In this document: positions 50,392-64,000 of the stretch, piece by piece
Layout: each line of letters starts with the position of its first letter
Numbering within the stretch: the first letter of the stretch is position 1
The notes under the pieces: generated by a model
Told to the model about the DNA's origin: nothing
The model's database searches: none
The model's input: only the letters and a program-made list of their open reading frames with translations
Assembly: GCA_965112735.1 (NCBI GenBank)
Contig: OZ218955.1
Location: 2,480,001-2,544,000, forward strand
Source of the DNA: Phaeosaccion multiseriatum
Lineage: Eukaryota > Protista > Ochrophyta, other classes
Length of the DNA stretch: 64,000 nucleotides
Direction of reading: 5' to 3'
Translations under genes and position numbers: made by a program

Positions 50392-51052
50392 GCTGTCTTA
50401 CTCCAGCTCTTTTCTCTTTCCGGCCCGATTTCGTATTGAAGTCTCTCTTTCTTTCTTCTTCTCCTTGTTGGTAGCAGATGCTCTTCTTTGACTGGTGGTA
50501 CTCAATGACCTTTTCTCTTGAGTGTTGTATTTTTTCTCTTATGTCTTTTGGTTCTTATGTCTTTGGTGCTGCAAGTTTTTTTGTTGTTGAGACTTTGGTG
50601 GCTTTATTTTTGAGAGCGGGTGCGCTTCGCACGTTGGTGACACGGCCGCGGATCGCCAATTGGGGGTGAGGTTTCTGGGCTGGGGTTGTGGTGTGTCTAG
50701 GTCCGGACGGGGGAGCGGGGGTTGGAGGACGACAAAGCGGCAGGTGGGAGCGGCAAGTACGTGCGACTGCGGCGCATCCGTATGCTTCTCAAACCCTAGT
50801 CACCATCCCCCTCTGATTTCCACTTCATTGCCGTTTAGATCTGGTGACGTGACCGATCCTCGCCGGCCTGGGATCCTGACGAGCTCTGTATCCGCCCAAC
50901 AATCAATCCCTGTGCCTGTGCCGGTAGTCGTGCGGTGCATCGTTCTGGGCTGCTTGGCGCTTCGCAGGGGGCGGAGAGCCACACGCTATCAGAGGTCACC
51001 AGCGCGTGGAAAGGGTGAAAGCGGGCCGTGAGGCTGGCAGGCAGAGTCAGGC

Positions 51053-52729
51053 ATGTCGTCCTCCGCCGTCATCGACCAGGTCAGGTTAAGGGGCTGTCTT
51101 CAGCTCTTCCTCTGTCTGTCGTTCTCTCTTTCTCTCTTTCTCTCTCGTTCTCTTCTCCCTCTCTCCCTCTCTCTCTCACCCCCTTTCCCTTTCTCCGTCT
51201 CCCTCCCCCTCAGAGAAACCAGGAAGCAACGTGCTATTGCGGTAACCTGGAGGAGCGGGTGACCGAGGAGCTGCTGTGGGAGCTCATGCTGCAGGCGGGG
51301 CCAGTGGTGAACGTGCACATGCCCAGAGACAAGGTGACGGGCGGGCACCAGGGCTTTGGCTTTGTTGAGTTCCGGACAGAAGATGATGCAGAGTACGCCA
51401 TCAAATGCATGAACATGGTAAAGATGTTCGGCAAGGCGCTGCGAGTCAACAAGTCCAGTCAGGATAGCCGCTCGCAGGATGTGGGCGCCAACCTGTTCCT
51501 GGGGCAACTGGACCCGGACGTGGACGAGAAGCTGCTGTACGACACATTCTCGGCTTTTGGTTTTGTGGTGCAGCAGCCCAAGGTGATGCGGGATCCGGAC
51601 ACGGGCATCAGCCGGGGCTTTGGCTTTGTATCCTACGACAACTTTGAGGCCTCGGACAGGGCTATTGAGCTGATGCATCAGCAGTTCCTGTGCAACAGGT
51701 GAGAGAGAGAGAGGAGAGGGGAGAGGAGGGGAAGGCTGCCGCTGTTTTGCTGTCCATCTTCTTATGCCCATACCCGTCGCATCCCTCTCTCGAGTCTCAA
51801 CGTACTCACCATGGCTTGGTTTCTTTCTTTTCTCTCCTCTCTCTCTGTGTCCCTTTTTCTCTTCTCTCTCTATCTCTCTCTCTGTGTGCAGGCAAATTGT
51901 TGTTCAGTACGCCTACAAGAAGGACACGCACGGACAGCGCCACGGCTCCCAGGCGGAGCGTCTGCTGGCGGCCAACAACCCCAACAAGTTCAAGCCCAAC
52001 ACCAACTTCGCAAGCGGCCCGGGTCTGCAGGGGCAGCTCTCAGCAGGACAGCAGCAGCAGACTGCGCAGCCGCCGCCGCCGCCGCCGATGGGAATGGGCA
52101 TGGGGATGCAGCAGGGAATGCCCCCGCCCCCACCGCCCCCCCCTGCGGGCTATGGCTCCTACCCACTTCCCTCGCAGCTGGGCATCGGCGGCCAGCAGCA
52201 GCAGCAGCAGCAGCAGTATCAGATGCCCCCTCCCCCCCCGCCTCCCCCTCAGAACGCGTTTGCTCCTACTCTCCCTCCCCCACCTCCTCCTCAGCACGGC
52301 TTTGCTCCTCCTCCTCCCCCCTCTTCGTATGGGGGAGGGCCGCCCATGCCCCCCCCGCCTGGGGGATACGGCAACGGCTTCCACCAGGGGCAGGGGCAAG
52401 GGGGGATGGGCTACGGTATGCCTCCTCCCCCTCCACCGTCTGGAAATTACGGCACACTGAGCATGGGAGGAGGAAGAGGAGGAGGAGGAGGAGGAGGAGG
52501 AGGAGGAGGAGGAGGAGCGAACTATGGAGGCATGGGAAGTCAGCCTCCCCCTCCTCCCAGCATGGGAGGGGCACCCCCCCCCCCCCCTACGGGGATGCCT
52601 CCTCCTCCTCCTCCTGGAGGTCCCCCTACGGGGATGCCTCCTCCTCCTCCTCCTGGAGGTGCGCCCCCTCCTCCCCCACCTCCTTCGAACGACGCCCCGC
52701 CACCGCCCCCACCCCCACCGCAGGAGTAG
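51053..52729 (+). CDS. SF3B4: Splicing factor 3B subunit 4 (SAP49), two RRMs plus Pro-rich tail
   Basis: [53 protein letters not shown]...[27 protein letters not shown]...[12 protein letters not shown]. Two introns. Confidence 0.97.
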
Positions 52730-53282: not shown

Positions 53283-55255
53283 TTGAATGCCTCCCTGTCG
53301 AGCAGCGTCACGTCAGCGCTGCTTCTGGCGTGGTCTCTCTCCGCCTCCGTATTGTATCCCCAGTCCACAAGGTAGAGACGGACTTGCTGCAATACCAGAG
53401 AGAGAGAGAGAAAGAGGAAGGGGAAGGCAGCAGAGGGAATGGAGTGTGAGGGAGGACCGAAACGCACACCAAAATGAAAAGTACATGCCCATATGCTAGA
53501 GCCAGACGTATGTACGTACGTACGTACGCACGTAGGCACGCACACAACATCCGCGCCCAAGAGACCCAAGAGAGGAGTGCAGACTGAAGGGTGCGCCATG
53601 GCGGCGCTTCCATACCTTGAGGTCGGCCCTCTTCGTGAAGGGCTCCAGCGCCACATAGCGGTCCTCCACAAAGTGGAACACGAGCTCCTCCTCCTCCTCC
53701 TTCTCCTCCTGCCCCCCCTCCTTCCCCTCCTGCTGCAGCGTGGCAGGGTACTCTTCGATGAGGCCAGCGATGATGTCGGGCTTGCCGAACTTGCCCAGTC
53801 CAAACACCTGCTCGTCCGCAATGTCGATGCCAAAGTGCCGCATCAGCTTCAGCACGAAGCGCGCCTGCTTGGTGGAGACGATCCAAAGATCCAGCCCCCG
53901 TACGCTTGTGCCTGTTGTTGAGCTTGCTGTGACCCCTCTTAGTCGCTGCTCCATGGCCGCCTTGATCTCATCCCCTACTCCCTCGTAAAAGGTGTTGGCG
54001 TTAAGCCAGCTGTCAATATCGTTCTCCATCCAGGCGTCGCGCGTGCTGCCGTACATGTCGATGAGCTCTTCTTTTGTCACGCCAAGCTTGTCCATGACAA
54101 AGCCCCGGGTGGTGGCGTTCCTGCAGTAGCAACAGCAGCACCAGTTGGAGCAGCAGCAGCAGCAGTAGCAGGAGCAGCGGCACATGGGCAACGGGAGAGT
54201 GAGTTGAAAAGCGCCAAAGCAAAGGGTAGCCGTGACTAAAGTTGGCTTGCTCACCAGTTCTGCAGCACGCTGACCAGCGTGGAGTATCTGTCCAAGTCCC
54301 CCTCAGTCACTGCCTCCGCCTCGCCCCCCCCCATGCCCATGCCGGCCCGGAGCTCCTGTGCCAGTCGCTGGGCGGCCTCCTCTGCGCCGCTCCCCTCTGC
54401 CACGGAGCGCTTCACAGCCTCGAAGATGAGCCTCCCCAGGAGGATGTTCTCGTAGCCTGTGTTGTGTGTGCATGCAGCCGGGCGCGAAGAAGCAAAACAC
54501 GCACAACAAAAAATGAGCCTTCAGACACTTGGTGTTGGTCATCCGCTTAAGCAGATCTCTTCTGCCAGAGTTATCAACTCGTCGTCGCTGTTACTGCCTC
54601 GCTCCATACGTACTGGAGACAGACCAGTAGCGACCTGTTCTAGCCCCCACTCACCCGTCTCCACCACGGGCCGCAGCACCAGCATCACCTCCATGTACCA
54701 CGTTGGCGCCTCCTGCTCCCATCCCGTGCCCTGCAGCACCTCCGGGGATATCTTCTGGATGCACCTGTATCCCGCCAGGCTGGTCTCCTTGACGCTGTTG
54801 CAGATGACGCCTATAGGACGTGCCATATCAGAGACGGAGAAGGAGACACAAGGATTGGCGCAGTGGTGCGGCTGCTTCAAGCACAAAGGTGGATACTATG
54901 CCAGTCTTCTAGCGAACACGACTCTGCAGCTGTAGTACCTACCGTCGAAGTCGAGGCAGTACACGTGCCGCTTCTTTGGCGCAGAGTCGTCCGAGCTACT
55001 GCTGCTGCTCATCTGACTGCTCGTAGAGGCCGCCCCCGAGGCAGCACGATGCATGCTTGACTGCCGTTGCTGCAGATTCAGTCCGTACTGCTGGTTGTGC
55101 CGAGCAACCGCAGAGCTCCTCCTGCACAAGTCGGCCCCAGCTGAGGATCCAGCTGAAGGGACAAAGGCCATCCCTCCACGAGGGCGAGACGAAGACGCCA
55201 GGAAAAAAGTGATTCCTGAGATCGACGACGACAGACTCCGTAACAACCGCACCAT
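53258..55255 (-). CDS. HAD-superfamily hydrolase (cyanobacterial/plant At2g45990-like), organelle-targeted
   Basis: Motif I YCLDFDG|VICNS, LRPVVETG|YENILLGR, WLNANTFYEGV, IVSTKQARFV, FHFVEDRYVAL and LYLVDWGYNT, with an N-terminal presequence. Confidence 0.88.
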
Positions 55256-55589
55256 GCTCTGGTGCTCGGTGCACTGTGGATAATATTCTTTCTTCTTGTC
55301 CTTCTGTGTGAATCCTGTGTGGGCGCGCGCCTAAACGTAAAGTTTCAGTTTCTGCATGTCCGCCGAAACGTTAGGGGCACTCACGATCTCTAATTGGGTG
55401 TATGCGCAAAACCCGGATTTTGGAATTTGGAGCGAGTTTTTCGGGCCAAATCGGGTGATTTCGTGTTGTTTTCGGGGGGCCGGAGCGAGGCACGCAGCAA
55501 GAACAGGGGGGGGGGGAGGGGGGGTTGATAAGTAGGCAGACTGGATGGATGAGGAGGGGGGTGCTGCCTACCTACTTACCGTCTGCGCA

Positions 55590-58500
55590 TTAACCCTGCA
55601 GTGGGTGCTCCCTGGCACGGCGGCCTCCTGGGGATGGTTGTGTGGTCTTAGCACGAGGAGAATCGAAATTCTCCTTGTGCTCGTAAAGTGCGCAAGCCAA
55701 GATGGCTCGCGCTGCGGAGGCGTCGCGGTGCTGGTAGCCATTGCACTCGGTGCAGTGGACGATTTTCACGGGGCCGACGTTGCTCAGGATGGCTGAGCAG
55801 GCGGGGACGCAGCATGATGAGGTGGTGTAGCTCTCGTCCTGCCCCAGAAGTACCATCGGGCGCGTGGTTGCCTGTCCCCAGGCGGAGCGGTTGGTGTTGG
55901 CCTGCGGTGGTGGCGGCGGGCGGTGTTGGGTACAGGAGCGGCCAGGCAAGCAAGGGCAAAAGACAGTTGGTGTGGTTGGTTGCTTGTGGGCTGGAGGAGG
56001 AGCAAGGAGTGAGGCAGGCAGGAGCGAGAAGCAATGGCTGGCTGGCCTGAGCCGAGCTGAGGAGTGGCTGAAGCAAGAGCAAGACAAGGGAGCTAGCAGC
56101 TACTCGCAGCTCACCTGCTTGAGGCTCTGCCGCAGCTCGCCCATGCGCAGCATGCTGCGGTAGGGGTTGGTGTTCTTGCCCCTCTTGATGCGGAGCTCCA
56201 CCTCCCCGAGAATAGCCGTGTCAAAGAGGCAGCGCAAGGCCCTCTTGGCGACGTGATTCGCCCGCTTCGAGTTGTGGCGGATGCAACGCCATCGCTCGCG
56301 AATGGCGCGTCGATAGAGGTTCCGCAACTCCTGGTTCTCTGCGGCTTCACCATCCTTCCCCGGTGGGGCGTTGACGTCCATGCTGGACTGCAATCGACGC
56401 TGCTGGTGCGCCTGGCTCGTGAGGGATCGGGCCGCCCACCCTTGGCCGAGGTACCAGTAGCTTTCCCGAGCAGGGTCACAGGCCACCAGCATGGTGTTGA
56501 ACCCGGGATCGAGGGCCCCGACGTAGGCCTGCGTTTTCTCCTTCGTACCGAACAGCTTCTTCCACTTTTTTGCCGGAACACCCTTGCCAAGAGCGTTGCT
56601 ACGACCACCACCCGGGGTAGTGGGGCCCACCACGCGGATGAAATCGCCCATCCGTGAGAACGTCTTGGCCACACTCTCTGCACCCGCGCGCTCGATGCCC
56701 CCCACCCCCATGGCACCCCTGCTTAGATGCCCCTCCCCGTCCTTTGCCGCCACCTGGGAAAAGCGCACCTCCTGCCCTTTGCGCCACTTTCTCCACTCCC
56801 TCCCTCGCCGCCAAACCAGCGACTCCGTCATTTGCAGGGAGCGGAAAACTCGCTGGTCCACTACCCGCTTCACCTCGTCGCCCCCCCTCCCGCAGAGGAG
56901 AATGCACTGCCCGAAGACGGCCACCACGCCCTCCTGAATTTGGCCTGGCAGATCATCCCGCCACCTCTGTTTCCACCCCGTCTCGTCCCCCTCGCCATCA
57001 TCTTCGAGCAGCTTGTTCAACTTCTTGAACCTCTCGTTGCCCCAAGAACCCCCCTCCCCCAGCCAAGAGGCCATGGTGGTGACGGCCTGCTGCGGCTCCG
57101 GCTGCTGCTCCTCCCCCCCCTTCTTCTCCTCGTAGCCCTCATTCTCCTCCTGCTGTCGCCGCTGCTCCTGCGATTCCCGATTCTCCTCTCCATCATCCTG
57201 CCCGTACACGTGCCTCCTCAGCTTGGTGAGGTGACGACTGACCAGAGCTTCATAGAGCCGCTCCAACTGGACCCGGCGCTCGGGCCCGACGTTCTTTGGA
57301 ATGGAATCGAGGCGCTTCCACAGGTTGTCCGCCAGCATCGCCGCCTGCTTCCTGAGCTTGGCACTCTCTTTGTTGGTCCTCCCTTTCCATCCCTTGTCTC
57401 CGGTCGGCTCCTCTCGTTTCTCCAGTCCCTCTACATAAACCCCCCTCCCCTCTGGACCTTGTACGTTCGAAATCTCGAAGGACAAGGACGCCATGAGGGG
57501 CATTCCTGCTGCTCCTGGCGGGGCAGCAGAATCCTCCCCCCGCCGCTCCTCTCCTTGTACTGCTCCTGGCGGGGCAGCAGAATCCTCCCCCCGCCGCTCC
57601 TCTCCTTGTACTGCTCCTGGCGGGGCAGCAGATTCCTCCCCCCGCCGCTCCTCTCCTTGTACTGCTCCTGGCGGGGCAGCAGAATCCCCCCCCCGCCGCT
57701 CCTCTCGTTCCTTCAGCCTCTCCAAATACTCCAGCACATCCACCTCCCTGGGCGTCTTGAGGGTGAGCGTGGACAAGGACATGAACTCGTCAGCCTCCAC
57801 AAACACCTCCACCGGGGGCGTCAGCGTTAACTTGGTTCTTGTTTCTCTGCCATCTCTCTTTCCTCTCTTCAGCACTCCCACCACCACATCCACCTCATGA
57901 ATACGAAGCAGCAGTCGATCCTGCGTTCGATTCTTCACGAGCCAAGGGTACTTCCCTTCGCCCGATTTGACAGCCTCAAACGACTCCCACGATGCGTCCC
58001 CTCCCCCCCCCCGTGGCACAAGGCGTCGCTGGCCGGCGAAGCCCTTGATCTGCTGCTTGGGCACGGGAAGAGACAACGTCTGGAGACGGAAATTGTTCGC
58101 TCGATCTGTCGCCTCCGCCACGAGTCTGGCCCTGTTGGCCTTGGCCTGCTGCCCGAGCGTCAGGCTCTTGAATGCGGCAGGTATTTTGCTACTCAAATGC
58201 AGTCGTTGCAGGCCAGGAGTGGTGGTAGTTGGTGGGTCGAATCGACCTTTACCAGATGTGCCGACGGTGAAGTAGAGGGGAGCTGCCCACTCGAGGCCGA
58301 GCTCCTTCTTCGACTGGCTCTCGAGACGCACGGCTCCTGTGTTTCAGAGCAAAAGGGGGGGGGGGTTAGTCACGCTCAATGTGAAAGAAAAAAAATAGAT
58401 AAGGAGGGGATGCCATGCTCACTCACCCGATCTCCATTTGGCCGCGGGGCTCCCCTCGCCTTGCGTGTTCGTCGTCTCGTCGTCAGTCTCATCGTCTGAG

Positions 58501-61500
58501 CTCGTCGCCCCCCTGCTCGTGTCATAGTCGTCCTCGTTCATGAACCGAGACGGGGTACGCGCCCTAGAGGATGTGCGGAGTTCGACCGGAGGGTTCGCAC
58601 TAGATAAGCTTGTGCCGGGGGGCGCAGGTGCCTCTCCGCTAGGGGAGCTGCCCCTCTGTTGGTTCGCCATCTCCGACTCCACCGCCATGGCAAGCTGCTG
58701 TGCTACGTCCCGCATTTGCTTCACCTCTGCCGCACCGTCCTTTTTGCGTATAATCATGTCCGGCAGAAGGCGAAACAGTACGTTGGCCAGCCCCTCCTCT
58801 CGCTCGCCGCTGGCGTCCACATCCGTGCCGCCGAAGACATGCGATCGCCCCCGCCACATCCCCTCCCTCTCCAGTTCGGGACTCACAATGTCAGAGGGCC
58901 ATTCGTATTCGAGAAGGTCACGTCGCTCCTCAGCCGCCCCCCAACCTCTGGCCCCTGCTCTCTCCGCGTCGTCTGTCTCCAGCTTCCCCTGCGTTGTATT
59001 GCGCGTCACCAGCACGCAGGCCCTCTGCCCGGGTTTCAAGACGCGGCCCCCCAAGTCGGTGGGCTGGGTTGGAACGAGCTCCCAGTCTACCACGGCGTGA
59101 AGACGATTCGTCTTGCCCTTCTTCTCTTCGCCCTCTCCTTCTTCCTCTGATTGCGGGCCCTCTTTGCTCGCCTTCTTGTCGTCGTTCGGGCCTCCGTGAG
59201 TGCTTTGTTGCAAGGCCACTGCAGCTGCAGCTGCATCGGTCCTCGCCGTCTTCCCGCCGCCCCCGTCGAGGTGGATGGCCAACAAGCGTCTATGGACTTC
59301 CTCCTTCATATACGGCGTCCAAGCCTTGACGCCCTGGAGTTGGCAGAAGGCCCCCCAAGCCTCTTCCAACTCCACCTCCTTCCTGTTTTTCTCTGGCGCA
59401 GCAGGAGCAGGAGCAGCAGTTGGTGCTACGGCAGCAGAGGCCCCCCCCACAGCAGCAGCAGCGGCAGCAGTTGGTGCTCCGGTAACAGAGGCCCCACCAG
59501 GAGGGCTTCCAGCATCTCCAGCAGCAGTTGGTGCTACGGCAGCAGAGGCCTCCTCCACAGCAGCAGGAGCGGTAGCAGTAGCAGTTGGTGCTACGGCAGC
59601 AGAGGCCCCCCCCACAGCAGCAGCAGAGGCCCCACCAGGAGGGCTTACAGCAGCTGGTGCTGCAGTAACAGAGCCCTCCTCCTCCGCAGCTCCAGCAGCG
59701 TTCGTCTCGCCCATGCCCATGATACGCGTGGCATCCCGGAGCAGACGAGCGACATTCACCCTTCCTTGACTCGCGGCCAGCAATAGCGTGGCGGCGTTGC
59801 AAAACTCAAGAAAGAGTGACCGAAAGACCGAGGGCAGCAGGTCTTTCACCGATTGTTCTTCCTCCTCCTCCTCCTCCTCCTCCTTCTCCTCCTTCTCCTC
59901 CTCCTTCTCCTCCTTCCTCTCCTCCTCCTTCTTCTCCTCCTTCTCCTCCTCCTCCTCCTCCTCCTCCTCCTCTCCCACAGAACGACGCTGGTACTGTCGA
60001 AGGATGCCGACTTGCCGTGTCGACAATACAATCTCCCGGGCCCCCCGTTGCTCTTGGAGCTCCTCGTCCGCGTCTGTCTCCATTCCGCCTGACATTGCCT
60101 CCGTGATGTAGGCGAAAGCACGGAGTGAGCCGACGCCCGCGACTTTAGCCGAGTGCTGGCGCCCAAGGGTTCTGGCCACGAAGGGGAAAAGCTCCTTTAC
60201 GATGAACTCCATACCTGCCTCGGCCTCAAAGCGGGCGTCGGCCAGCTTTGAGGAGTAGCGAATGACGGCCTCCTCGGTTCTCTGCTGCGTGTCTGAGCCG
60301 GGATTGGGCTTCAGCCTGACGGCCCTCGAACTGTACGGTTGTCCCGCACGAGACTTCTTGGCGTTCCTTCTGTTCCATGTGGCCGTTGCGGTGCTCTTAG
60401 CACCCATCCTTGAGTCCTCTATCCTCTTTGCCTCCTTGCCCCCTTCCTCCGCCGCTTCCTCCGCCGCTTCCTCTGGCTCTTCCGCTTCCTCCGCCGCTTC
60501 CTCCGCCGCTTCCTCTGCTCCTTCCCGGGATCCATCGCCAAGGGGCTGATAGGGGTTGTCATTTGTGATACCCCTATCTGCAACACCTCTCTGATCAGCT
60601 TCAGCCTTAGCTTCTGACCACAGAGCCGGGAAACTTGGAGTACGAGGAGGCGGCTGCTGCCCTTCGGGCAGCAGCGCGCCCATGCTGCGCCCCTTGGGCT
60701 TGCGCCGTAGCTTGCCGAACGGCACCAGCTCCACTACTGAAGTAGGCTCCAGACGCCTGAGACGCAGACTCCATGGGCGCGACTGCTTGCCTTCCTCCCC
60801 CTTAACCCTACGCTTCAAGTCTGTAAGCAGTTGTCGTCTTGCTGTTTCGTCCAGTCCACTGGCCGTCGCCAAATCTTTGATGACGACACCAGTATCCTCC
60901 TCCCCCCCCTTGACGCGAGGCAACATGATGCTCCAATCCCTCTTGTTCGCCAATCGCCTCTGGTCCCTCGTCCTTCTTCGGGCGGCGTCAAAGCTGGTGG
61001 CAGGTAGGTCAGCCTGTTCACATCGCAACTGAGCGGAAGGCCGCGCCCAAGCTTTTGACCCCGAAAAGTCAACGAATCGGGTGGCCAAGGACGCTAAATG
61101 CTCTCGCCGGACCCACTCCTTGCATTCACCCACGGGGTAGAATTTGGGCTCATCCTTCTCCTGGAGAGACAAGCAAGGGGAGCTGAGTGAGAACATTGAC
61201 ATGGGAGAGCGAGGGTAAAGAACGATCATGTCTGACTCACTGACTCACTGACTATCTCACCTTGATGCTCGTCTTGTCGCCCTCGCCCATCATCGCCACA
61301 TTGAATCTGACGCCCTCCTTCTTGGTGGTCCTCTTGACCAACACCAGGCGGCCAGTCCCCGTGGCCGTGAAATTCCGCTGGTAGTTGTCAGAATTCCCCC
61401 CCTCGTCCCGGCAGGCGCCGACCTTCGCGCCTCGGATGACGGCTTTCCCAAGGCCTCGAATGTGGCCGGCCGCGTCATAGTTATCCATGCCCGTGATCTT

Positions 61501-61583
61501 GGCCGTGGAATGAGGCTTCGACTCCGTTTCCCCTTCCCTCTGGCACCTGATCACCTTGATCACCTCCGACGCCGCCGGGGCAG

Positions 61584-61638
<55 letters not shown>

Positions 61639-63795
61639 CCCCTCAGCAGCATGGTCGGAGAAGAAGAATTTCGTAAGGTGGTGGAAGCGGAGGGCGGGGG
61701 TTTCGCCCTTGTCGAGGAAGAAGCAAACCGCGATTTCCACTCTCTCGTCTCCACCCCACTCCCCTGGGCGGCGGAGGGCTTTGAACTTCTGGAACCTGTC
61801 GAAGCGCGACACCAGCTGAGGCAAAGGGAATCAAGAACAAGCAACAGTGGTTGGGTGAGTGAGTGGTTCAGTCCATCAGGAAGGAAGGCAGGAAGGGAGG
61901 AAGGAGGGAAGGAGGGAGAGGGAGGGAGAGGGATGCAAGGAAGGAAGGAGGGAGGGGAGGAAGGAAGGGAGGAAGGAGGGAAGGAAGGGAGAGGGAGGGG
62001 AGGAAGGAAAGCGGTCCAGCCTGGACTCACCTGGAGGATCCATGGCACGAGAGCACGAGTCCGACTATGCAGGTCGTCTAATTCCGTGGCCACCTTGACG
62101 AACTTGGTACGGTCACACTGATAGCTTGGGCCTCCCTGCGTCCTCCTCTGCTTCCTCCTCTTCGCCTTTTCCCCACCTCTCCTGCTGCGAGCCTTCTTCG
62201 CGTCGTCGGATGTTGCTGTGACGGACGGTAGCATACCCTCAGGAACTTGCCGAAGCGCGTCTTTCACAGTCACTGGGCGCTCAGTATTACTGTGGCGAAC
62301 CACTCCACTCCATGCCGGAGCGGAGAGAAACGAAGGCTTAGGGTCGGCACGGTCGAGGGCTCTGTCCATGTCGTCTTCGAATTTGACTGGATTTCCCAGA
62401 ACTGTGTTCTCGGTGGGGGCGGCAGAAGCGGGCCACCCCGTCTCCTTCCCGTCGCCTGCCGTCGCCGCGTCCAGATCGTTGATAGCTTCGATAAGAAGCT
62501 GCCTGTGGTGTTGCCGCGTTGCCGCGATTTGCAGTGCGCGGTAGCAGACCCCCTCGCAGGGGAGGGACCCTTGGCTTCGCTGTCTTACTTGGTCCGTGTC
62601 GATGGCCTCCTGCCACGCGTAGAAGTACGTAGATGGGTGGTCTACTGGAAGCACAAGGGTCGGTGTGGACCCGTTCTTGCCGAAGAACTCTTCTGGCCAG
62701 CCATGCTGTGTTATCAGCGTGGCCAACAAGTCTCGCTTCTTGGTGGTGTACTTCTCCTTCCAGTCTCCTCCTCGATTAAGACTGGCTGCAGTCGTCCCCG
62801 TCAACATTCTCGAGGCGACCCCGCCCAGTGTCACGACAGCGTTCGGCGCTCTGCCTACCCCCTTCAGCCACACATGGGCCAAGAAGCCCAGAATTCCTGC
62901 CCGAGCTCGGAGCCACTCCGCTGTTCGGCACCGCTCAGCCGTGCCGAGGGAGGCTTGAGCGGCAGCTTGCCTGCAGCGACACAACTTGCCCATCACATGG
63001 GGGTCGGATAAGACAGCTGGGCAGACGGGGATACTGTCCAGATTGACAAAGATGACCTTGCTGTCGTCGTGCCTGCCCTCATTGACCTCAAACTCAACGC
63101 GGTTCGCCTGTTGGCTGTACAGGCAGCATACGTCCCCCGCGCTGCCGATGGAATAGCTGGCTCTCTTCGGCGATTTGGCGGTCCCGCTGTCGTCGGTTTC
63201 AATGCGTAAGGCCGGGCACTGGCCAATTCTCCACACCACCACCCGCTCCTTGTTGCTCCTGGCCAATCGCATCGCTGCCAGGAGCTCCTCCTTCCAGGGG
63301 AAGTCAGTCCCCTTTCCAAGCACCAAGCTCTCAAAAGCCGCCAGCATGTCTTCGGGGGTGTCATCCTCATTCTCGCGAAGAGAGAGTAATGCCGCGTTGA
63401 TGTCCCGGGCACGGTGCTGGCCGTTCGGCACCTTGTTGACGTCCAAGTTGTCCTTGCCCAAAAAAAAGGCTTTGGCCGTCTTGGACTGCTCGACGCCTTT
63501 CTCGCTCAGCTCGAAAGGCGTCGAGCGGGTCTTTTGACCATCTTGACCGGACTGTCGAGGAGCGTTGCAGGGCCCTTCTTCTTTCTCATTCCGACACCAC
63601 GCTTTACACGTGTATGTCTGTTGTCGGGAGGGCAAGAGGGAGGGAGGTCAGAGTCAGTTGCTGGGGGGCGCGTAGCTAGCTCATGGGGGGAGAGGCAACA
63701 TCATACCCCCTCTCGTCTCTTCCCTTACCTTTGGGCCTGCTGCCTTCCTCGCTGGGGCTGCCTTTCTCGATGCTCCACCTCCTCCGCTGCTCTGC
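55590..63795 (-). CDS. Giant multi-exon Fanzor/TnpB-family RuvC nuclease (at least 2,470 aa) with N-terminal UDG-like domain; 5' end probably outside window
   Basis: Exons 63617-62031, 61815-61261, 61160-58427, 58336-56115 and 55901-55590 join through canonical GT-AG introns into 7,410 nt in frame, and a further in-frame exon ends at 63729. C-terminal motifs: RuvC-I VGALDPGFNT, RuvC-II GQDESYTTSS, Zn finger CCVPAC...CTEC and RuvC-III HRDASAARAI. Confidence 0.85.
57510..57706 (-). repeat. 51-bp tandem coding repeat (~4 copies; EERRGEDSAAPPGAVQG) inside the Fanzor-like gene
   Basis: tgctcctggcggggcagcagaatcc... starts at 57510, 57561, 57612 and 57663. Confidence 0.95.

Positions 63796-63870: not shown

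Positions 63871-64000
<130 letters not shown>

Follow-up and report, generated by a model that had tools for sequence, protein, structure and literature searches.

Fanzors are, to our knowledge, the only known eukaryotic RNA-guided DNA nucleases and, in the form in which they have been described, they are compact enzymes devoid of accessory enzymatic domains; their length, according to the 2023 surveys, is reportedly ~400–1000 amino acids (aa). Two broad surveys of these proteins make no mention of glycosylase or deaminase fusions, and a full-text search of the literature for a natural pairing of a Fanzor, or of another RNA-guided nuclease, with a glycosylase returned only reviews and engineering papers. 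The subject of the present analysis is a gene predicted on the minus strand of a 64,000-nt stretch of DNA (the "window") from Phaeosaccion multiseriatum (GenBank assembly GCA_965112735.1, contig OZ218955.1, positions 2,480,001 to 2,544,000). An intact RuvC nuclease of the Fanzor/TnpB type closes the predicted mRNA, which appears to encode, upstream of the nuclease and in the same frame, a highly diverged domain of the uracil-DNA glycosylase (UDG) superfamily, nearest to family 4 and to its phage-type relatives; to this reading as a whole we assign a probability of about 0.45. An initial annotation of this DNA had presented the union of a UDG with an RNA-guided nuclease in a single chain as not known to have been described, and the only cases found in the literature searched are engineered.

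The six frames of the window contain 776 open frames that are 50 codons long or longer, and one of these, on the minus strand from 63635 to 61560, encloses the UDG-like stretch. The initial annotation had located the latter at 62570–63250; its in-frame limits are 63251–62571, and the five peptide strings by which it had been recognized are all present in the minus-strand frame of this same open reading frame (ORF), in the order in which they had been listed. The 227 aa so delimited, which match the Pfam family PF03167 below threshold (E 0.021) and have UDGs as language-model neighbors (see below), correspond to residues 145–371 of the in-window protein, a numbering that starts inside the gene, which runs on upstream. 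The part that is statistically supported, by the Pfam alignment and by those of our own hidden Markov models (HMMs), goes from strand 3 and its helix, having the signature P-x-x-V-V-x-L-G-x-x-A, to strand 4 and the H-P-S of motif B (62631–62846), the His of the latter being His349 of the in-window protein. Two cysteines lying 15 residues apart (C-R-Q … E-R-C, 62925–62990) fall in columns C93 and C108 of the alignment A1 described below, and a Lys/Arg-rich cluster which follows the domain (62142–62198), read from the translation, resembles a nuclear localization signal.

The stretch is part of exon A (62031–63617, 529 codons), bounded by the acceptor CAACAG/ACA at 63618/63617 and by the donor CAG/GTGAGT at 62031/62030. 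Exon A is preceded by a phase-0 mini-exon of 22 codons (63729–63794; CAG acceptor at 63795, donor AAG/GTAAGG at 63729/63728) whose frame joins its own, and is followed by a CT-rich phase-0 intron of 215 nt (61816–62030, GTGAGT…CAG), by exon 2 (61261–61815, 185 codons, with an internal poly-Ala run), by exon B (58427–61160, ~911 codons, ending in phase 1 and containing poly-Glu, poly-Ala and Ala/Gly repeats), by exon C (56115–58336, ~740 codons) and finally by exon D (55590–55901), which consists of 103 codons and the stop TAA at 55592–55590, all on the minus strand. The five GT..AG introns, taken from the mini-exon to exon D, measure 111, 215, 100, 90 and 213 nt, start with GTAAGG, GTGAGT, GTGAGA or GTGAGC and end with a pyrimidine-rich tract and CAG. 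The frame of each exon opens shortly before its acceptor and, past the donors of exons 2, B and C, the ones through which reading was continued, a stop is encountered within 2–4 codons; within the window the joined frame amounts to 2491 codons and its one stop is at the end.

The codon-position bias points in the same direction: in exons A–D the G+C content at third positions (GC3) is 0.65–0.74 and that at second positions (GC2) 0.47–0.57, with 0.69 and 0.49 in exon A, a GC3 of 0.74 in exon 2 and a GC3 of 0.71 in the UDG-like stretch taken by itself. A conserved gene resembling that of the splicing factor SF3B4, located on the plus strand at 51028–52729 and consisting of two RRM exons, a Pro/Gly-rich tail and a 194-nt GTGAGA…CAG intron, served as reference; its codon bias is similar (GC3 0.79 vs GC2 0.34) and its intron is alike in donor and acceptor style, in particular to the 215-nt intron downstream of exon A, and comparable in length to those of the Fanzor gene. 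The first ~165 codons of exon C include no Met although the TnpB-like N-terminal motif lies near codon 80, so that the Fanzor core needs the upstream exons. The gene itself extends upstream beyond the edge of the window, past an (AC)n run at 63874–64000.

That the exon containing the UDG-like stretch would be spliced in frame toward the RuvC exons, as the initial annotation had it, therefore holds at the level of the sequence, given the GTGAG/GTAAG donors, the pyrimidine tracts, the CAG acceptors and the 2491-codon frame; a predicted fusion is in this sense well supported, and it seems likely that the two sets of exons belong to one gene. To call the fusion "N-terminal" is loose, the stretch being ~1350 residues before the start of the Fanzor core and ~1900 before the RuvC-I Asp in a gene that continues upstream. 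The sequence between the two modules is largely of low complexity, with poly-Ala runs, poly-Glu runs and tandem repeats. No zinc-deaminase motif was found in this gene.

As to the nuclease, the TnpB-like N-terminal strand motif (58097–58017, in-window residues 1728–1754) and the RuvC-I Asp, within Y-V-G-A-L-D-P-G-F-N (56525–56496, residue 2257), are both encoded by exon C, whereas exon D encodes the RuvC-II Glu (G-Q-D-E-S-Y, 55850–55821), a C-x-x-C … C-x-x-C zinc finger (55814–55737) and the RuvC-III Asp (H-R-D-A-S-A-A, 55730–55698). The D-E-D triad, in the order characteristic of Fanzor/TnpB proteins, and the C-terminal zinc finger are thus all intact. The Pfam family PF07282 (Cas12f1-like TNB) is matched with an E of 2.8e-5, its 24.6 bits lying under the cut-off of 26.3, and the best sequence match in the PDB is the mimivirus TnpB-like L79 (9b0l_P, E 0.074), whose alignment covers the RuvC Glu, the zinc finger and the Asp, followed by LaTranC and Cas12m (the E-values of the PDB matches being 0.07–1.6). 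A word-based homologue search with the RuvC-I region of the Fanzor was blank.

Between the Fanzor N-terminal motif and RuvC-I, exon C contains a 51-nt unit repeated 3.9 times with 97% identity (57509–57706) which codes for a 17-residue Ala/Pro/Gly/Glu/Arg peptide, and in exon B there are a degenerate 57-nt Ala-rich repeat (59398–59630) and a trinucleotide run of 38 copies coding for poly-Glu (59860–59972). Just downstream of the 3′ end of the Fanzor gene there is an ORF for a HAD-like hydrolase (53496–54254, minus strand) and, given this ORF, only ~330 nt (55256–55589) would be left for a guide RNA or for the end of an element.

The first line of evidence for the UDG nature of the stretch comes from profiles. 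PF03167, the UDG superfamily, is the sole Pfam family matched by the 227 aa; the match (15.3 bits) spans residues 133–215 of the query and nodes 83–127 only, out of 141, of the profile, and with the C-terminal 132 or 90 residues alone the E is 0.01 (the bit scores ranging overall from 15.3 to 16.4). The N-terminal 95–117 residues have no match in either Pfam or PHROGs. Profiles of family 4 were built from 120 IMG/VR loci (L001–L120) retrieved with a degenerate nucleotide pattern that describes motif A of family 4, one set consisting of the stand-alone proteins (62 of 175–280 aa) and the other of 112 domains. With the HMM of the first set the stretch obtains 8.6 bits (P 5.6e-5), the best of 2000 composition-preserving shuffles reaching 5.1; with that of the second it obtains 11.0 bits (P 1e-5) and the best of as many shuffles 4.6, the aligned piece being in either case the strand-3/helix element only. 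Furthermore, the ORF containing the stretch ranks first on the family-4 HMM among the open frames of the window, with 8.6 bits vs 3.8 for the runner-up. In model-global alignment the C-terminal half (profile nodes 115–170) is equaled by just 2 of 3000 shuffles; over the entire family-4 profile this type of alignment does no better than the shuffles, and hmmalign places just the local piece.

Kinship with family 1 was considered and rejected: a profile made from 96 viral proteins of this family (GQDPY/HPSPLS) gives −4.2 bits, a score within the range of the shuffles, and this result leaves the analogy initially drawn between the GQCP of the stretch and GQDP without support. Since the family-1 HMM is negative, the signal appears specific for family-4-type UDGs and not an effect of composition.

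A second line of evidence concerns the individual residues. In A1, an unsupervised MAFFT alignment of the stretch with 48 phage UDGs, the residues kept are G36, A38, G39, C93-R94, C108, L114, P136, G143, A146, H205 and P206; G143 and H205 are invariant, P136, P206 and A146 are shared, and G36, A38 and G39 are aligned with the G-x-A-G of P-F-V-G-x-A-G. Motif B, i.e., His-Pro-Ser/Ala after strand 4, is present together with the strand-3 signature P-x-x-[IV]-[IV]-x-L-G-x-x-A that precedes it. C93 and C108 occupy the columns assigned, by reference to 1ui0, to the two C-terminal ligands of the family-4 4Fe-4S cluster; the N-terminal C-x-x-C pair that would complete the set of four cysteines has no counterpart in the domain as aligned in A1. 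Likewise not kept are motif A (G-E-A-P-G) and the Phe of P-F-V-G, and the column of the strand-2 Asn holds a Lys in the MAFFT alignment; if placed as in the initial annotation, this residue would be Asn214. The latter placement, in which G-Q-C-P is motif A and V-I-F-V-N strand 2, is structurally attractive, a strand being predicted on V-I-F-V-N in both AlphaFold runs. The assignment of the N-terminal motifs is nonetheless ambiguous because MAFFT and Viterbi choose other placements.

The third line of evidence is provided by the ESM Atlas, where 290 aa around the stretch reach a top score of 0.90, with 75 of their 100 closest clusters belonging to the PF03167 set, where 93 of 100 named clusters retrieved with the 217-aa domain carry PF03167 (recognition 2734) and where the N-terminal 130 residues, from which the Pfam-matched part is excluded, retrieve 84 PF03167 clusters out of 100 plus one of DUF1643, presumably a member of the clan of PF03167; these figures are to be read bearing in mind that the scores are ≤0.90 with fewer than 170 shared features, that the tool is not calibrated for parts of proteins and that the separate embedding of a part is uncertain. 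These neighbors represent the best argument that the whole stretch, and not one pair of motifs, would descend from a UDG.

Before the alternatives are considered, the sequencing reads available for the locus deserve mention. Six public runs from one sample (X1–X6) contain introns and exons alike, with shares of 0.92–0.97, and the even depth, the lack of joints and the contigs of up to 254 kb identify X1–X4 as genomic DNA, so that the public runs were rejected as evidence concerning RNA. The depth over the UDG-like domain is about that of its flanks (~508 vs 475 in X1), which indicates that the domain is single-copy at ≥95% identity. Between 63100 and 63870, on the other hand, the summed contig depth in the four DNA runs is 2–4 times the flanking single-copy level, contigs break near 63279–63289 and a C>A variant occurs at 63291; these features suggest that the 5′ part of exon A, along with the mini-exon, exists elsewhere in the genome in nearly identical copies. 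At 59300–59499 the depth is ~15–40 times the baseline, and the Ala-rich repeat of exon B must therefore be common to many loci.

Several results weigh against the reading proposed above and, in the first place, they raise the question of whether the resemblance could be fortuitous, exon A being genuine coding sequence of a giant Fanzor gene and the stretch an unrelated or novel α/β, or partly disordered, region in which P-x-x-V-V-x-L-G-x-x-A and H-P-S happen to occur. Every profile score is sub-threshold and the signal is confined to ~80 residues: the scores with PF03167 are below the Pfam gathering score of 24.3, searches of the stretch in NCBIfam, PHROGs, PADLOC and, by phmmer, in the PDB were all blank, and the Pfam E-value taken alone is weak because other exons of the gene yield chance matches at a similar level (e.g., Ribosomal_60s, 0.023, on a poly-Ala run). 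The family-4 HMM corresponds to an E of ~0.04 per window, i.e., to a value well above 1 over the ~1100 windows of the genome, and is hence not significant genome-wide; the N-terminal half (nodes 40–128) is equaled in model-global alignment by 486 of 3000 shuffles, and MAFFT and Viterbi each put motif A and the strand-2 Asn elsewhere than the initial annotation, motif A falling on non-conserved residues.

The structural results are no stronger. AlphaFold run on the single sequence has a pLDDT of 36; when A1 is supplied, which makes of it a threading-like and non-independent test biased by its alignment, the model is still poor (pLDDT 55.5, pTM 0.51), with three of the four expected strands (66–70, 138–142 and 199–203), helices in the expected order and the first 36 residues disordered, and a UDG fold is not adopted in spite of the UDG relatives in the alignment. 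In comparisons of the HHpred/Foldseek type, as recommended at the outset, hhalign against the family-4 alignment has a probability of 25% across 20 columns, and Foldseek matches the alignment-biased model to UdgX and to the UDGs of Thermus and Thermotoga only at a TM of ~0.3 and with E >0.1. With the same model VIA-align places 1l9g first (Z 6.1 over 110 residues) and UdgX third, with periplasmic-binding/LacI-type folds at 5.5–5.9, a result that does not set the UDGs above generic α/β folds. Finally, no homologue of the stretch emerged from any search: the word-indexed search with the 227-aa domain was blank up to E 10, an exhaustive phmmer search with a 478-aa part of the ORF against 1.84 billion representatives produced zero matches and failed to retrieve its own query, searches of the JGI metagenomes and of the IMG/VR loci were blank, as was tblastn against phages, and no paralogue of the stretch was found within the window. 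Against a mere coincidence stands the fact that the HMM and the language-model features, two different methods, agree on one family among thousands, that the N-terminal half alone also retrieves UDG clusters, that the cysteines coincide with the presumed Fe-S ligands of family 4 and that the family-4 score exceeds that of every shuffle whereas family 1, the control, is negative. Chance resemblance appears unlikely, albeit far from negligible, and the derivation of the stretch from a UDG probable on the strength of these similarities; of what had been claimed for its identity, the C-terminal half stands as going beyond chance, by virtue of the sub-threshold PF03167 match and of the family-4 HMMs, whereas the N-terminal motifs (GQCP, SIGSAG and VIFVN…CP) are not significant.

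If the domain is genuinely of UDG origin, it might nevertheless be a decayed and non-functional remnant serving as no more than a linker inside a giant protein peculiar to the lineage; alternatively, the gene in its entirety might be the decaying ORF of an immobilized transposon. The failure of the unsupervised alignments to recover motif A, the strand-2 Asn and the N-terminal Cys pair, the large insertions within the domain and its low-complexity flanks would fit such a history, which we deem very unlikely insofar as the 2491-codon frame and the RuvC triad are intact and the codon-position GC bias is retained in the UDG stretch. The UDG-like domain could also be real but reside on a transcript of its own, the upstream gene ending at exon A, at exon 2 or past either of them, for instance if the exon-2 donor is read through as far as the TAG at 61254–61252, and the Fanzor mRNA starting within exon B. 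Indeed, the single mRNA is deduced from the sequence, the joined transcript resting on the structure of the gene since the public runs are genomic DNA, and this too must be counted against the proposed reading; moreover, ORF B formally starts with an ATG at 61229, the modules are separated by the long distance mentioned above, and a protein of this size is at odds with the length that known Fanzors are said to have. Yet the five junctions are all canonical and frame-preserving, with stops directly after the donors past which reading was continued, the interval from the TAG to the ATG at 61229 is only ~25 nt long and resembles a pyrimidine tract with its CAG acceptor, and exon C has no early Met; two separate transcripts consequently seem rather improbable, although somewhat less so than decay.

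Under the favored reading, that of a diverged UDG-superfamily domain and an intact Fanzor on one predicted mRNA, the domain would fold as a UDG-type α/β module, bind DNA and perhaps flip a base. Its chemistry is uncertain, neither a canonical motif A nor an N-terminal Cys pair being recognizable: a non-standard base could be its substrate, or the domain could just read DNA or lesions. Tethered to the nuclease by the ~1350 largely low-complexity residues that separate it from the Fanzor core (~1900 as far as the RuvC-I Asp), the module might act at, or near, the sites defined by the guide; alternatively, it might protect or process the DNA of the element itself, as is thought to be the case for the UDG modules carried by phage DNA polymerases. 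Our best guess, as judged from the predicted protein, is that a diverged module which binds DNA or a base is tethered to the RNA-guided nuclease; base excision directed by the guide, or a role in defense, would be speculation. It is also conceivable, but a long shot, that the genome holds a family of giant Fanzors to which base-modifying or base-excising modules are tethered, a natural guide-directed system that would deaminate, excise and cut for the purpose of transposon homing, targeted mutagenesis or silencing of rival elements.

Were the fusion and its activity real, evolution would have arrived at the layout of the laboratory glycosylase base editors, and the locus would offer a direct handle on the role of Fanzors in their hosts as well as new parts for genome editing. 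The conservative result, namely a Fanzor gene that is intact, split by introns and 2491 codons long or longer, matters for annotation: since no homologue of it could be detected among 1.84 billion proteins, it will be missed by standard pipelines.

How, then, does this locus compare with the known systems? With the family-4 UDGs (the Thermus and Thermotoga UDGa, 1ui0/1ui1 and 1l9g, and UdgX, 6ail) and their phage homologues, the stretch has in common the strand-3/helix signature and the His-Pro-Ser/Ala of motif B, the C-R-x … C pair, spaced like the C-terminal Fe-S ligands, the G-x-A-G element aligned with P-F-V-G-x-A-G and, if insertions are allowed for, a similar domain length, and it is to these enzymes that the structure of the alignment-guided model compares best, albeit weakly. 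Unlike them, it has neither a recognizable G-E-A-P-G motif A nor an N-terminal C-x-x-C, the Phe of P-F-V-G is replaced, insertions of ~20–40 residues are present and the whole sits within a protein longer than 2491 aa.

The closest natural parallel to the association of a UDG with an enzyme of a mobile element would be, by analogy, that of the phage family-A DNA polymerases having an N-terminal UDG-like domain, such as the phiLo polymerase (9qhs), where a family-4-type UDG module is likewise placed on a mobile-element nucleic-acid enzyme; 9qhs also figures in the list of structures that match the alignment-guided model. The phage fusions differ in that their partner is a polymerase, the canonical motif A is kept and the hosts are bacterial. 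Among the IMG/VR proteins with the family-4 motif A, 45 of 120 are fusions of 400–1264 aa and, in the 12 that were inspected, the UDG part occupies the N-terminus or lies close to it; the sizes of these fusions match that of the UDG-fused family-A polymerase (9qhs), which is for the partner domain a candidate only.

With Fanzor/TnpB proteins such as the mimivirus Fanzor2 L79 (9b0l), the predicted protein shares the D-E-D triad of RuvC, the C-terminal zinc finger (TNB) and the presence of introns in the gene, whereas the described Fanzors are several times shorter and the predicted protein has a long upstream extension, of which the UDG-like stretch is a part. As to the engineered glycosylase base editors, in which variants of UNG are joined to Cas9 or Cas12 nickases, the layout would be the same if fusion and activity are real, a glycosylase being tethered to an RNA-guided DNA-binding enzyme; the present system would differ from them in having a nuclease that is apparently fully active, rather than a nickase or a dead enzyme, an enormous linker, a glycosylase chemistry that is putative and a natural origin.

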